Source: Octopus vulgaris
Lineage: Eukaryota
Reading direction: 5' to 3'
DNA: 64,000 bases
Assembly: GCA_951406725.2 (NCBI GenBank)
Contig: OX597826.1
Location: 75,888,001 to 75,952,000 of the forward strand
Part shown: in pieces, positions 47,201-58,800 of the stretch
How the letters are laid out: every line of letters starts with the position of its first letter
Position numbering within the stretch: the first letter of the stretch is position 1
Notes under the pieces: generated by a model
Told to the model about the DNA's origin: nothing
The model's input: only the letters and a program-made list of their open reading frames with translations
Database searches by the model: none
Made by a program: the position numbers and the translations under genes

Positions 47201-47502
47201 ATTGTAACATATTATTTTATATATAAATTTCCTCTATTTACATAATATTGAGGTCTCTTTCTTTCTTTTGTTATCTTACCGTTTTTACCAATGTATATAT
47301 ATATATATATATATATATATATATATATATATATATATATTTATATATATATATATATATATATATATATATATATATATATATATATATTATTTACATT
47401 TGACGGATATTTGTTCTCATCTTGTTTGTTGTTAATACAACGTTTCGGCTGATACACCCTCTGGCCTTCGTCGGGTGTCTTGGGGGAAATTCCGCGTAGT
47501 TG

Positions 47503-47720
47503 TTAAGAGCACGGGCTACTAACCCCAAGATTCCGAGTTCGATTCCAGGCAGTGACCTGAATAATAATAATAAAAACAACAACAACAACATCGAAAAATA
47601 CTTTGCGAATGAGAACCTAGGTTCGAAATTTGCCCATTGATGAAGGCTGGAGGGTATATCAGCCGAAACGTTGTGCTTAACAACAAACAAGATGAGGACA
47701 AATATCCGTCAAATGTAAAT
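47503..47720 (+). mobile_element. tRNA-headed SINE-like element with a hammerhead-like tail (copy 1), preceded by an inverted copy of its own 3' half (47394-47497)
   Basis: Head GCGTAGTTGTTAAGAGC...GAGTTCGATTCC; tail TTGATGA-A-GGCTG(gagggtatat)CAGCC-GAAACGTT-GTGCTT. Confidence 0.7.
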
Positions 47721-52859: not shown

Positions 52860-55800
52860 CTGTTCAAAGTAGAAAAAACAAACAAAAATACACATTAATT
52901 AGATTAACAACCTGACATTTGATCAGTTTTTAAATTTTTACTTGTTTCGGTCATTTACTTGTTTCAGTCATTTGACTGCAGCCATGCTGGAGCACCACCT
53001 TTAGTCAAACAAATCAACACTTACTCTTTGTAAGCCTAGTACTAATTCTATCGGTCTCTTCAACCAAACTGCTAAGTTATGGGGACATAAACACACCAAC
53101 ATCAGTTGTCAAGTGATGGTGGAGGGAGAAGCATGGATACACAAATATATGCATGCATATATATATATATATGTTGTGTAATGTCAGTGTGCATACTCGA
53201 CAGAGTGTAGGTACCTTGAGAGAAATGTTGGACCTAGGACTGGTTTTATAATAACATATGTCTGATGAAATGGTCTAATTATATAATAACATATCTCTGA
53301 TGAAATGGTCTGGTTTTATAATAACATAAGTCTGATGAAATGGTCTGATTATATAACAACATATGTCTGATGAAATGGTCTGGTTATATGATAATGTATG
53401 TCTGATGAAATGGTCTGGTTATATAACATATGTCTGATGAAATGTTCTGATTATATAATATACTGAAGTACATTATTGAGCAAATAAATAACTATTCCAT
53501 AGAATCATTCATAACATAATCTGAACAATTCATATTCTTTTATTATATACTTCCTTGAGTCTTCAACTGCTGATGGAATTATAGGGACACTAACAAGACA
53601 TAAGAATATGTCTTCAGCATTTTAAACCTGACAACCCATTACCTCACCTGGATGCAGACACAGCCTATCTCTTTCCAAAAGAAACAAAGGAGAAACAAAG
53701 TGAGAAAGAAGGAGAATGGACCCTAACATTAAACTGTTAAAAATGTACATTTTCTTCATTAAAATTTTAATTGCAACTAACAATTTACAAAAACAAACAA
53801 AATGTTTATGAAGCATATACAGTTGATAATCTTTTTATCCAAAATGCTTGGGACCTGATGTGTTTTACATTTTGGAATAGTTGTCAGTATGGAGACAGCT
53901 TAGTCATGAAACCCAAAACTAAACAGGTTATGTATTTACATTTTATAATACAGCTTACAAATATAATGTGAAGTGGTTTTATGTAGCACTGTAGTATGGA
54001 AGACACATATTAGTCATTCAAGAAACACACAAGCAACTTCACTTAACTCTCTAACATTCAGATTACTCTGTCAAATATAATGCTTATTTATCATCATCAT
54101 CATCGTTTAATGTCCGCTTTCCATGCTAGCATTTGACTGAGGTCTGGCAAACCAGGATGCGGCACCAGGCTCCAATCTGATCTGACAGAGTTTCTACAGC
54201 TGGATGCCTTTCCTAACGCCAACCACTCCGAGAGTGTAAAGGGTGCTTTTACGTGCCAGTCAGGCGGTACTGGCAACGGCCACGCTCAAATGGTGCTTTT
54301 TATGTGCCACCTGCACAGGAGTCAATCCTGCGGCACTGGCAACGACCTCGCACGAGTGTTTTTTCAAGAGCCACTAGTACAGGTGCCAGTAAGGCGACGC
54401 AGGTAACGATCATGCTCGAATGGTGCTTACTACATCCTCTCCAGAAAAATGGAAAGTTGGCTGCTTATAAATGCCAAAAGCTTCCTAAGCGAAGAATGCA
54501 CCCCACAACATAGACTGGTAGTTTAGTGACTTCAGGATCAGGGCTAAGTGGGTGCCCAGAAGACGACCAGCATGGAGGAGTATTTATATTGTTTCAAATT
54601 AATCCTGCACTATTTCATAGCTTCAGGATTTTGATCAGGTGATTCTATATTTCTAGAATGACATTGGAGGGAAGGTGTGAGAGGTCAGATCTGACTGGGT
54701 TGAACCTAAAAACAGGTAGAATGTTCCAGATTGAGCTGCTTTAAATGCTTAAGAATCAAACACTTATTATCTAATACCAAAATTTTCATCTCTCCAACCA
54801 TGACCTGATCACTGATAGAATTCCACTGCAATTGTTTTAGTTTCAACACATGATCTCAGATCAAATCACTTGTCTGACAAATCCACCCCAACAGTTTTAG
54901 ATAAATTTAGCACCAATCTAGTTAAACGGTTCTGCTTTGTGAACAGATCACTAATTACATTTTCAAACCCAATTAGTCAACCACGTAAAACAGATACAAG
55001 TTGCTTTCAGTTGTTACACTTTTGTCTCATGTTCACCTACAACCCATTCTTTTATAAAACCTTATTCAAGCAATTCCAAGAATTTGCCATTTGCTACTTC
55101 TCGTAATTGAAAACATTTTGACTTTTAGAGTTTTCAAATTTTGGAAAACGGAGTCTCAAATGCATTAACAAAATTACAAAAGAAAACATTCTTTTAAAAC
55201 AAGAATGATCCAACTTACTTTCTGGGACCATAAAACTGTCTCCTGTTGTCAGTATCATATTCTTGTAACCAATCCTTACTTTGATTTTGCCAAATTGAAC
55301 AAGGAACATCTAAGAAAATACAGGAAATATAAACAAAAACCGACACAAAATGCTACATGTGCCTTTACGGTTTTTCTGTATGTAACATGTTTACAAAAAG
55401 AAATTTCATTTTAAGGGGTGGGGGTTAAAAGAAGGTCACTGTGACATGGTGACAGGGATGTTTGTATTTTGAGTAGAAGAATGGGAAATAATCAGGTTTC
55501 GGAAGTTTGGTTCTACTACATGTCTGGGCAGGCAATAAGTCATTTGATAAAGATTGTGTGTAATATAAGTGTGTGCCAGTCGTGTTTATTTTTATTTATG
55601 CACCATATATATATATAAACCGAACCTGGAACTTAACTATGGCCTGTCTATAGCACTTATTCAGCATTACCTGACACCTTTGAGTCCCAATGACACCATT
55701 ACCTCAATATATATATATATCATATATAACGTCAGCTTTCCATGCTAGCATGGGTTGGACGATTTGACTGAGGACTGGCAAACCAGATGGCTGCACCAGG

Positions 55801-58800
55801 CTCCAATCTGATCTGGCAGAGTTTCTACAGCTGGATGCCCTTCCTAACACCAACCACTCAGAGTGTTAGTGGGTGCTTTTACTTGCCACCTGCACAGGAT
55901 GCAGTCCAGGGGCACTGGCAATGACCTCGCTGAAATGTTTTGTGTGTGTAACATCAACACCATCATTTAACGTCTGTTTTCCATGCAGCCATGGGTTGGA
56001 CGGTTCAACTGGGGTCTGGGAAGCCAGGACGCTGTACCAGACTCCAGTCTGATCTGGCAGTGTTTCTACAGCTGGATGCCCTTCCTAATGCCAACCACTC
56101 CAAGTGTATAGTGGGTGCTTTTTACGTGCCACCGGCACAGGGGCCAGAGGAACTGGCATCAACCACAATCGGATGGTGCATTTTTATGTGCCACCAGCAC
56201 AGAAGCCAGTCAAAGTGGCACTGGCATCAGGCTAAATATGTTTCATAGTGAGTGGAACCTCAGAATATCCAAGTGAGATGTATATCACAGCTACTCTTCA
56301 GGCTACGGATAACCTGATATATATATATATATATATAGATATCGGTCGAACCGTCCAACCCATGCTAGCATGGAGAACGGACGTTAAACGATGATGATGA
56401 TGATATATGATGATATATATATAAATTTAACAGCACAGTTAAACCTGGGTAGAATTTTAATTGATAAATTGCAATTATAGATTTTGGTTCTTTCTATATA
56501 ACTAACATTAACTCAGGGTGAGGAGAAAGAATCATGGACGAGTAGAAGACTAAACAGTTCAAATTGCATTCCATTCAGTTAAACGAAGCTTAACAACTTA
56601 TCTACCTTGGTTGTGGGTTTGCCTGTTCACTCTGACTAAGCTGCTGCTCAAAATGGTCAATTAACCCTGAACTTCAGCATCAAAGTGGAATTTGAACTCA
56701 GGCTGTATTAATCAGCTGCATGGCTGCTATCAATCTCTAAGTGCCCAAAAAGAACCTCCTCATACATAAAAAAAACGATCCAAGGGACATAACTGCATCA
56801 ACCCCCCCCCCATAGAAAAATCACAAAAAACAGTGGATAATGAATGGCCAGACTAACATGAACTGTCTCTTCCCAGAGGTAAAAATGGATTTTCCTAAGG
56901 CCAACACCCCTATCTAGAATAAGCGGAAGCTAACCAAAGCATCAATAACAATTCCAAACCCACAAGAGCTGGGAGAGGTCTACTGATGTGAAAAGACAGT
57001 CGAGAGTCAAGAACAGAAGTCATCAGTGGCTTTAGCTTCATGAACAGCAAAGCCCTTAAATACCTCCACCTTCACACAACTACTTATTTTAAGTGTTGGT
57101 ATTTATTTTAGCAATTTCTACTGTCACCTGCAGTTATGGGGCATTAAACACAGACACTGCTTTTTCAAGCAGCGTTAAACACACACACACACACACAAAC
57201 CCATAAGAAGCTTTCATAGCTTCTATCAACTGATTTCAATAGTCTGCTCAAGGCTATAGATCAGGGGTCACCAAACTTTGGCTCACGGGCCTCATCTAGC
57301 CAGCGCAGTCAGTTCATCCGGTTTTGTGCCTTTTGTGTAAGTACCTGCAATTGCTTCTGGTATGGCATCGGTGTTTGGAACAACTTATGTCCGAGAGCAA
57401 GCATTTTCTGTCAGCAAATCAAACGAGGTTGACTTATGAACATTTGAAAGCAATTCTCTTGGTCGGATGCAGTAATCCCAAAGCAAATATTGGTGATATC
57501 TTAAAAGCTAAACGCCAGTTTCACAAATCTCACTAACCATTTTTGCTGCTTATTTTGTGAGACTCAGATATGTGCGCATTGGGTGTGATATAATCATCTT
57601 ATTGCTAACATCACCTTCTTTGATAACTTTTTGGCAAATAAATATGTTGGTTGTCTTTATTCCATTGTGTATTTACTTTATTGTATTGAACAAAATGGTT
57701 ATGTGACCCATGCTTGTCATTCTGTCAGTTATCTGGCCCGTCGTGAAAAAAAGTTTGGTGACCCCTGTTATAGAGGATACTTGCCCAAGTTGCCACATAA
57801 TGGGATCAAACGCAAAACCAGATTGTTGCAAAACGGACTTCTAAACCGCAAAGCCTCACTCATGGACACTGAACCATTATCACTTATCAAAAGTGATAAT
57901 GATGCCTTAATACACATGGCTCACATATTGTCTTCAGGTTTGATCCTGCAGTGCAGCCCCTTGGGTAACTGTCTGCTACCACAGCCTCAAGTCAAACAAA
58001 GTCTTGGAAGTGAAATTTAGAAGACAAAAACTGTACCAAAATGCATCAAAAGGACCGTTCTTGTTTTAGGGTGGCACCCTTAACCCATTACACAGTTTAA
58101 CACCATTACATGAATTTAGGTCCTTTTAACACCAATCTATTAACCCCTTTGACACTGTGATTAAATTTCACTGACATTCTCATAATGGTGTTTATTATCC
58201 ACCAACACAATCGAATTGACATTCTCTGTTCCTGCAAAACTTTTCCTGTATCCTTTGTAGGTACAGTTTTTATATCCACCACCAAAAGTATTTGGTTCTT
58301 GTTCTATAAAGAGATATTCAATGAAAATATGGAGGGAATAAAATAAAGTAAAGCTGAAAAATTGTCTTTGTGAAAAGCATCACTGGGGGTTTATCCACTT
58401 CTCACAACATAAAGAGGGGTTCAGTTCTATATGCCCACCGGCATATGGCGTAGTGGTTAAGAGCGTGGGCTACTAGCCCCAAGATTCCGAGTTCAATTCC
58501 AGACAGTGACCTGAATAATAATAATAATATTGAAAAATACCATGGGAATGAGATCCCAGGTTCAAAATTTCTCCAAGACACCTGATGAAGGCTGGAGGGT
58601 ATATCAGCCGAAATGTGTTAACAACAAACAAGATGAGGACAAATATCCATCAAAATGTAAATAATATAAAGAGAGGTTCTTTTTCAAAGCCATAGAGTTG
58701 AAACTGCTTTCTGTATGGTGGTAAAATTTTGAGCACTAACCACTTTCTGAGGTCTAACCACTTTCTGTGTTCAATGGGTTAAAATTGTTCAAATCTAAGA

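Follow-up and report, generated by a model that had tools for sequence, protein, structure and literature searches.

The window analysed here is a stretch of 64,000 nucleotides from the Octopus vulgaris genome (C13:75888001-75952000, in a 2.8-Gb assembly of 227 contigs), and it contains two insertions of one repeat family of ~265 bp, which we call composite 1 (47389-47759) and copy 2 (58440-58667). An initial annotation, made from the window alone, had described three pieces of a repeat in which a tRNA-like head is joined to a hammerhead-like tail, and had proposed that it borrows the machinery of Penelope elements. All three pieces are present, and their limits were corrected against the family consensus; in copy 1 a 30-nt 3′ extension (47730-47759) had been missed. 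We interpret the family as a short interspersed element (SINE) that joins a tRNA-type promoter for RNA polymerase III (Pol III) to a 3′ module of the type found in Penelope-like elements (PLEs), and that is probably mobilised by the reverse transcriptase and GIY-YIG endonuclease of a PLE rather than by a long interspersed element (LINE). We put the probability of this reading at roughly 0.78.

The two arms of composite 1 meet head-to-head. Its inverted arm is without the 30-nt tail but complete at the 3′ end, with no hidden tail beyond that end, and on its outer side it adjoins a (TA)n array; the right flank of the composite, after position 47759, again reads TATATA. Copy 2 lies within a 12-bp target duplication (AAAGAG[G/A]GGTTC) and is preceded by a micro inverted arm. 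One part of this arm (AGTTCTATA) repeats the final 9 nt of the tail in reverse complement, and another (TGCCCACC) is similar, likewise in reverse complement, to the 5′ end of the element. The promoter boxes are split between the insertions, with an intact A box only in copy 2 and an intact B box only in copy 1, and each hammerhead region carries a different lesion, as had been noticed at the outset (Table 1). The second strand of a predicted 3′ stem lies inside the tail; this stem is present in both the minimum-free-energy and the centroid fold, with a z-score of only -1.1.

Table 1 Features of the two SINE insertions in the window (positions are those of the window).
Feature	Position	Strand	Basis
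(TA)n microsatellite, insertion site of composite 1	47294-47390	.	Tandem Repeats Finder
Composite 1, inverted arm, 5′-truncated, q126-236	~47389-47493	-	blastn to consensus
Hammerhead remnant of composite 1 inverted arm, variant A; box CCGACGA, U4>C, inactivated	47434-47479	-	sequence
Composite 1, direct arm, q11-265, tail-bearing, ~10 nt 5′ truncation	47494-47759	+	blastn to consensus
B box GAGTTCGATTCC of composite 1 direct arm	47535-47546	+	sequence
(AAT)n/(AAC)n linker between head and 3′ module, composite 1 direct arm	47560-47589	+	sequence
Hammerhead remnant of composite 1 direct arm, variant A; stem I 5′ strand deleted, C3>U	47637-47678	+	sequence
Predicted 3′ stem-loop, AGAUGAGGA (47690-47698) pairs with UCCUCAUCU (47733-47741)	47690-47741	+	RNA folding
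Optional 30-nt tail AATTCCTCATCTCTTAAATATAGAACTATA, composite 1 direct arm	47730-47759	+	sequence
Copy 2, left target-site duplication AAAGAGGGGTTC	58411-58422	.	flank comparison
Copy 2, micro inverted arm, 17 nt	58423-58439	-	sequence
Copy 2, direct arm, full-length, tail-less, variant B	58440-58667	+	consensus alignment
A box TGGCGTAGTGG of copy 2	58446-58456	+	sequence
B box of copy 2 with CpG decay, GAGTTCAATTCC	58489-58500	+	sequence
Hammerhead region of copy 2, variant B, GAAA-TG-TGTT, 3-nt deletion, predicted dead	58577-58619	+	descriptor
Copy 2, right target-site duplication AAAGAGAGGTTC	58668-58679	.	flank comparison

A search of the genome with copy 2 returned at least 4,165 first-look candidates, and the 40 that were scored were 87-93% identical to it, with matches of nearly full length, so that the co-occurrence of head and tail extends to other copies. 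From 31 oriented copies we built a consensus of 265 nt, numbered q1-265, in which an A box (q8-18), a B box (q52-62) and an (AAT)n linker (q76-89) are followed by the body and then by a 3′ part consisting of the hammerhead region (q139-184), an AC-rich stretch and a 9-bp stem (q196-204/q239-247). The family has two alternative 3′ ends, at q~231-239 and at q265, and the element is ~235 nt long, or 265 nt with the optional tail.

Abundance was taken from exact-pattern counts over the whole genome, for which the reversed-pattern controls all gave 0. These counts were 3,432 for the 29-nt hammerhead core, 6,798 and 1,179 for the strings diagnostic of two hammerhead variants, A and B, 2,151 for a head anchor string and 210 for a 36-nt tail string. 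Extrapolation from these strings at ~6-8% decay per site would give roughly 10^4 to 3x10^4 arms for the family as a whole. Together with the target duplications described below, the counts characterise a short, non-coding, dispersed, high-copy SINE. A gapped-pattern search found 651 loci in which the head end is joined to the hammerhead core within 50-80 nt, a number that is misleadingly low because the (AAT)n linker expands. Among 32 hammerhead-core loci chosen without bias, the sequence continues into the body and linker of the SINE at 24; an internal deletion is present at 2, and at the other 6 the core meets an arm on the opposite strand. From the head side, ~40 of ~55 readable continuations enter the body of this SINE; the other ~45 of 100 rows were unreadable because the linker outruns the printed stretch.

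The linker is itself a hyper-expandable microsatellite, longer than 57 nt in ~45 of 100 head-anchored loci and sometimes taking the form of (ACT)n or (GAT)n. Two features of the genomic distribution were also observed. A segment of 2.1 Mb (C7:115639817-117746942) holds eight of the 210 exact tail strings, where ~0.16 would be expected, and this cluster may be a local hotspot or reflect segmental duplications. Near-identical head pairs on the same strand, 5.4 kb apart (C1:7959524/7964976 and C1:60314270/60319697), point to tandem segmental duplications that carry the SINE.

The consensus A box (TGGCGTAGTGG) and B box (AGTTCGATTCC) are separated by 33 nt and agree with a Pol III type-2 promoter in sequence, in spacing and in distance from the 5′ end (motif definition as quoted in PMC8969392). 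The tRNA-like head of the initial annotation stands with regard to these boxes and their place at the 5′ end, and the likeness to a tRNA beyond them is weak: the sole Rfam match in the head is to the tRNA model, in register (model positions 8-63) and without the acceptor stem, at 10.8 bits (E=9.5). The tRNA that the head resembles is presumably tRNA-Arg(ACG). The 265-nt sense strand contains no TTTT run, a slight indication that is compatible with Pol III read-through into the flank. Judging from the boxes, the element would be transcribed by Pol III.

The same head and linker were also seen running into another repeat body (…GTCCGYTTTCCATGCTRGCATGGGTTGGAC…), at C1:1224233-1224312, at C1:1234241-1234320 and in the flanks of loci L015 and L030. 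That the head is common to another SINE family suggests module shuffling.

Insertion architecture

The way in which the copies are inserted is the strongest evidence for Penelope machinery, and it is stronger than that on which the initial annotation had based this link. For PLEs, strong 5′ truncation, an inverted 5′-truncated copy at the 5′ end, a 30-40-bp tail that is often at one end only and a bias towards microsatellites have been described (PMC8557442, Craig et al. 2021), and a purified PLE protein prefers AT-rich DNA (PMC11167929, Frangieh et al. 2024). In the octopus family, an inverted, 5′-truncated arm abuts the 5′ end of a full-length copy in 18 of the 31 loci; these inverted arms always retain the 3′ end, and their 5′ truncation points vary between q1 and q159. 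The optional 30-nt tail (AATTCCTCATCTCTTAAATATAGAACTGTA) is present on exactly one arm in all 18 composites (the direct arm 10 times, the inverted arm 8 times), and the other arm ends at q~231-239. If arms carried the tail independently with a probability of 0.5, the chance of such an outcome would be 4e-6, and Smith-Waterman comparison of the flanks with the tail revealed no hidden tails. The rule is strict in the SINE, in contrast to the 'often' of the PLE literature. It recurs in miniature in apparently solo copies, such as copy 2 and L009, where a few inverted nucleotides of the tail end stand beside the 5′ end of a tail-less copy.

Of 26 loci tested, 22 have the complete unit flanked by a target duplication of 7-17 bp, compared with 1 of 26 in a shifted control. 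Such a duplication was found at 16 of 17 composites tested; composite 1, inserted in (TA)n, was not scorable. The duplications are 78% AT, against a background of 63%, and microsatellite targets such as that of composite 1 make up a minority of the 31 loci. The tail lies inside the duplication and therefore belongs to the inserted DNA, not to the target. Twin priming, nested independent insertions and an origin of the tail from the target site were rejected as explanations, since the duplication brackets the composite as a unit, with the tail inside. Close pairs (≤1 kb) among the matches listed in four genome-wide lists were in minus-then-plus, that is head-to-head, orientation in 23 of 23 cases (5, 9, 2 and 7 per list, with a few loci common to the lists), and the first 100 places of these lists contained no tail-to-tail or same-strand close pairs. 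An inverted truncated copy at the 5′ end, a tail at one end, AT-rich or (TA)n targets and duplications of variable length are the published signature of PLE insertions (PMC8557442, PMC11167929) and not one of LINEs or retrozymes, and the association with Penelope machinery made at the outset is well supported.

Two recurrent junctions were noticed among the insertions. Truncation of the inverted arm recurs near q102-106 (…CTCATTCC| joined to the 5′ end GGGCATATGG) in L005, in L025 and at C1:880505, 901661 and 1055767, which suggests a pause site or a microhomology-guided junction. In L019, L020 and L023 the same ~300-bp repeat (5′ end CATGGGCAATTATGGAGTGAATTTTAGGGC…) is inverted against the 5′ end of the SINE with an identical junction (~230-300 bp upstream). 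The tail state differs among the three loci, and the repeat showed neither a shared tail nor a clear target duplication; either a heterologous partner in head-to-head position or a subfamily extended at its 5′ end could explain it.

The hammerhead motif and its two variants

The consensus of the 31 copies reads GACAC-CTGATGA-A-GGCTGG...TCAGCC-GAAA-CG-T-T-GTGTT, and the complete minimal type-I hammerhead that had been proposed from the three pieces in the window is restored in it with every core nucleotide kept. It contains C3-A9, G12-A14, the A15.1-U16.1 pair and H17 (here U17), a bulged A between positions 9 and 10.1, a G10.1-C11.1 pair, the palindrome A-CG-U, a helix I of 5 bp and a helix II of 5-6 bp (6 bp in the consensus). 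Hallmarks of PLE hammerheads include the G10.1-C11.1 pair, a palindrome at 15.2-16.2 and a short helix I (PMC4209133, Cervera & de la Pena 2014). All four hallmarks taken from that study, namely the bulged A, the G-C pair, ACGU and the 5-bp helix I, are present in the consensus, and none of them is demanded by searches for the catalytic boxes.

We formulated a descriptor with the two boxes, 0-1 bulged nt, G10.1-C11.1, a helix II of at least 4 bp, a palindromic helix III of 0-8 nt, U16.1, H17 and a helix I of at least 4 bp. It accepts the consensus, one genomic arm of the family and an unrelated inverted pair in L039, and gave 0 matches in 20 shuffles of 330 kb on both strands. With 3,432 cores in the genome against 0 in the reversed control and no match in the shuffles, the motif is far beyond chance. 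In individual copies it is mostly lesioned, and a fully intact hammerhead was found in only 1 of ~49 arms (L027:1355-1400).

The hammerhead occurs in two forms. Variant A reads GAAACGTTGTGTT and is the form predicted to be cleavage-competent, with a cut predicted after q179, that is after GAAACGUU. Such a cut would sever the promoter-bearing head and body from the 3′ start sites of reverse transcription. Variant B reads GAAACGTGTT and is 3 nt shorter; its deletion places a G at position 17 and removes stem I, the ACGU is retained, and the descriptor rejects it. By the NUH rule, a hammerhead with G17 should not cleave, and variant B is predicted to be dead for this reason. No further diagnostic site distinguishes the two variants. 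Variant B accounts for 12 of the 31 sampled direct arms, in a sample drawn with a B-type query, and genome-wide the ratio of A to B is 6,798:1,179, or 85:15.

Thirteen composites have both arms over the site that separates A from B. Eight are concordant and five are mixed (L006, L013, L016, L021 and L027), four of the five with a clear flanking duplication, and the type of the inverted arm looks independent of that of the direct arm. Recurrence of an identical 3-nt deletion was considered as a source of the mixed arms and is unlikely. We conclude from the mixed arms that two different RNA molecules are copied per insertion event, which fits priming on both strands by a dimeric enzyme.

Whether the ribozyme is put to use is a separate matter. 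Among the alternatives, the one that survives best retains dependence on a PLE and adds catalytic use of the hammerhead, for the trimming of read-through transcripts or the regulation of template supply; we hold it possible, at well below even odds. The predominance of the predicted cleavage-competent variant A (85% of the diagnostic strings) and the intact core of the consensus speak for it, as does the Anolis PLE, whose hammerhead cleaves when its protein is present (PMC11167929). Hammerhead mutants of the same Anolis element, however, insert normally in vitro (PMC11167929), variant B has reached four-figure counts with a G17 and no stem I and co-inserts with variant A, and cleavage would part the promoter-bearing body from the priming site. 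The four-figure counts of a variant that is predicted to be dead suggest that catalysis is not needed, and catalytic competence of the hammerhead seems dispensable for spread.

The palindromic ACGU is kept even in variant B, which leads to another possible role, one that we consider doubtful, in which the minimal hammerhead would be less a cutter than an RNA-RNA dimerisation handle that brings two templates into a dimeric PLE ribonucleoprotein by way of the palindromic helix III, and this complex would prime on the two DNA strands from different start sites. If true, this would account for the head-to-head arrangement of the composites, the mixing of A and B between arms and the strictness of the one-tail rule. 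The tens of thousands of short insertions would then constitute a natural barcoded record of the unsolved mechanism of Penelope integration, and the family would be the first Pol III SINE clearly dependent on a retroelement other than a LINE.

Mobilising machinery and relation to known elements

The cycle that we propose for the PLE-mobilised SINE would begin with Pol III initiating at the internal A and B boxes and reading through the linker, hammerhead, AC-rich stretch and stem-loop into the flank. A dimeric PLE protein would bind the 3′ module and nick both strands of AT-rich DNA 7-17 bp apart. The cDNA would be primed internally, at one of two sites located before or after the 30-nt tail, on two separate SINE RNAs, one per DNA strand. 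The two cDNAs, one of them usually truncated, would meet head-to-head and give an inverted-plus-direct composite with the tail at one end and a single bounding target duplication. The hammerhead would have been inherited from the pseudo-long terminal repeat (pseudo-LTR) of a PLE, and its catalytic competence would not be required for spread. What the sequences show directly is the anatomy, the composites with their one-tail rule and target duplications, the use of two templates and the counts over the genome; Pol III transcription, the identity of the enzyme, the internal initiation at two sites and any ribozyme activity are what we infer. In the study of the purified enzyme, the PLE protein differs from R2 or L1 in that it cuts and extends both DNA strands, reverse transcription starts internally at two adjacent stem-loop sites ~90 nt past the hammerhead cut, and the tail is the stretch between the two start sites (PMC11167929). 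The 3′ geometry of the SINE is similar to that of the Anolis PLE used there: end 1 lies ~55 nt and end 2 ~86 nt past the predicted cut at q179, with the tail between them.

Possible sources of Penelope enzymes are plentiful, as the genome holds at least 5,955 GIY-YIG candidates and a young, very abundant Penelope-like family (L061-L066, e.g. C16:20834800-20840600) with intact frames of 781 aa and copies that are 93-98% alike. Members of this family have pseudo-LTRs that are 99% identical within a copy, internal repeats of ~90 bp in the 3′ untranslated region, an inverted upstream fragment and a 3′ end that abuts (TA)n, and no hammerhead box.

Several results weigh against the proposed dependence on a PLE or against details of it. 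Comparison of the SINE tail with the pseudo-LTRs of PLEs of the same genome, which the initial annotation had suggested as a check, gave a negative answer for the dominant 781-aa family, which has no similarity at its 3′ end, pseudo-LTR or start of the open reading frame (ORF). Two copies of other PLE families likewise showed no similarity to the SINE 3′ module and no hammerhead motif, and none of the 32 unbiased hammerhead-core loci lies in a foreign, non-SINE context. That no matching autonomous PLE was found, in a search that covered the dominant family and these two copies, is the main weakness of our interpretation; the partner may be an older, decayed family, or recognition may operate without sequence identity. 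The in vitro work, in which start sites did not differ between strands (PMC11167929), would not lead one to expect so strict a one-tail rule, and partial head-to-tail tandems are rare, with only short extra pieces in L008 and L018. In the head, the Rfam tRNA score is low, and ARAGORN found no tRNA, also with its threshold relaxed. The 31 copies were picked by similarity to copy 2, a variant B query. Finally, the Infernal scan that had also been suggested as a check failed to support the motif: the Rfam model RF00163 (Hammerhead_1) gave no match at E≤10 on the intact arm of L027, on L007 or on the window, and it finds 49 other canonical hammerhead loci in the same genome. This is likely because the model expects a helix III, and we read the miss as a limit of the model for hammerheads without one rather than as absence of the motif.

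With no partner identified, the family might be an ordinary tRNA SINE that depends on LINEs. The hammerhead would then be a coincidence or relic, and the inverted arms would have arisen when a LINE reverse transcriptase switched templates or underwent twin priming. The short direct repeat at the 3′ end (GTAAATAAT twice) resembles LINE and SINE tails, Octopus vulgaris is reported to have active LINEs of the RTE, CR1, R4 and L1-Tx1 groups (PMC13282606), and the head is common to at least one other SINE body. We nevertheless regard this explanation as unlikely. Twin priming inverts a non-overlapping 5′ part, whereas here the direct arm is full-length and the inverted arm duplicates the 3′ end; the mixing of variants A and B between arms means two RNAs; an optional 30-nt tail at exactly one end (18/18) is described for PLEs only; and the motif has four PLE hallmarks that lie outside the catalytic-box searches. 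No LINE-like tail was evident in the 3′ module of the element, although a survey of the LINEs of this genome was not made.

A retrozyme, which the initial annotation had named as a possibility, of the non-LTR kind and spreading via hammerhead-processed circular RNA and rolling-circle reverse transcription, would suit the type-I hammerhead with its dimer-compatible palindromic helix III and the proposal that animal retrozymes depend on PLEs (PMC7229834; bioRxiv 10.64898/2026.07.22.740005), but is highly improbable, since there are no tandem arrays (0 same-strand close pairs among the first 100 places of the four genome-wide lists), single units are bounded by target duplications, each unit has one hammerhead whose cut would detach head and body from the 3′ priming end, and the predicted hammerhead-dead variant B was amplified.

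Among known systems, the motif comes closest to the minimal hammerheads of PLEs (PMC4209133), with which it has in common the CUGAUGA and GAAA boxes, the G10.1-C11.1 pair, a short helix I, a helix II of 5-6 bp and the lack of a real helix III, of which only the palindrome ACGU is left, implying dimers. It differs from them in residing in a Pol III SINE and not in the pseudo-LTR of a coding PLE. Unlike PLEs, the SINE has no ORF, and partial tandems of the pseudo-LTR type are rare in it.

The schistosome elements SMalpha and Sjalpha have Pol III-type boxes. They are also short, dispersed and SINE-like and carry a type-I hammerhead (Ferbeyre 1998; Laha 2000; both via PMC8490949), but theirs is canonical and efficient, with loop-loop contacts, and not of the minimal PLE type. 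We found no report of a PLE-type composite or tail architecture in these elements. Animal non-LTR retrozymes are likewise non-coding, hammerhead-bearing and proposed dependants of PLEs; according to the accounts in PMC7229834 and bioRxiv 10.64898/2026.07.22.740005 they form tandem arrays and circular RNAs and have no Pol III head, in contrast to the dispersed, single-unit, tRNA-headed SINE. Non-autonomous Chlamys elements, of which MRC1 of Chlamydomonas is an example, are short and carried by PLE machinery as well, but, as presented in PMC8557442, have 3′ ends in common with known autonomous partners, possess pseudo-LTRs and lack a tRNA promoter and a hammerhead. With tRNA-derived SINEs, including OK, OR1 and OR2 of octopus (Ohshima & Okada 1994, via PMC4758252), the family shares A and B boxes at the tRNA positions, and with classical tRNA SINEs in general a modular head, body and tail, a high copy number, dispersal, target duplications and a head that is shared with another body. 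Its tail, unlike theirs, is not LINE-like, and it inserts as inverted composites. OR2 belongs to the CORE-SINEs, and the present element has no evident CORE domain; it could be the same as OR1 or OK. In the literature searched we found no Pol III SINE with a tRNA promoter that combines a minimal PLE hammerhead with a PLE integration signature; Repbase, Dfam and the 1994 description of octopus SINEs were outside this comparison, and a description under another name is possible.

SINEs are defined as parasites of LINEs, and PLEs form a separate, poorly understood class of retroelements. To our knowledge, the dependants of PLEs known so far, retrozymes and MRC1, are without a Pol III promoter. 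A high-copy tRNA-promoter SINE with the full Penelope signature would widen the definition of a SINE. The insertions measure only ~250-500 bp, which makes thousands of Penelope integration outcomes readable. Results of this kind from the family, namely two template RNAs per event, one arm starting before the tail and the other after it, and catalysis that seems dispensable, bear directly on points left open by the first study of a Penelope enzyme in vitro (PMC11167929). In the curated repeats of Octopus vulgaris, SINEs make up 11.6% and are mostly unclassified, and that annotation makes no mention of hammerheads or of a link to Penelope (PMC13282606); the present family would help to explain part of this unclassified SINE fraction.

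Other hammerhead elements and features of the window

The window contains a second Penelope-style footprint at 26100-26252, beside (AT)n, consisting of two heavily 5′-truncated arms of ~50 nt placed head-to-head. The source of both arms is the 3′ end of another element that carries a hammerhead (…GAAACGATCG…CTTGTTGCTTATTTTGAT). Two head-to-head copies of this second element form a near-perfect palindrome of 485 bp at L039:90-574, with arms that are 95.7% identical (see also L074:772-1097), and each copy carries a type-I hammerhead of its own, TTGG-CTGATGA-GTACT…AGTAC-GAAA-CGATCG-TA-CCAA. The L039 palindrome abuts a (TA)n array that also ends a 781-aa Penelope copy.

The 49 loci found by RF00163, with a best score of 45.5 bits, include L069-L074 (e.g. 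C5:6546758-6546804 and C7:15930010-15930117). One family among them is ~108 nt long and has a large insert in helix II and a palindromic CGATCG helix III, and upstream of some of the loci are sequences resembling GGGCATAT, the 5′ end of the SINE.

The whole window yielded no tRNA gene with ARAGORN and no Rfam family at threshold. A 35-bp tandem repeat of 6.4 copies at 53240-53460 has CTGATGA in its unit, and the descriptor found no hammerhead structure in it. At 32986-33105 lies an open frame with a match to the first part of PF00112, the papain-family cysteine protease domain (E=6.6e-8), and this cathepsin-like exon places the SINE copies of the window in or near a cathepsin-like gene.

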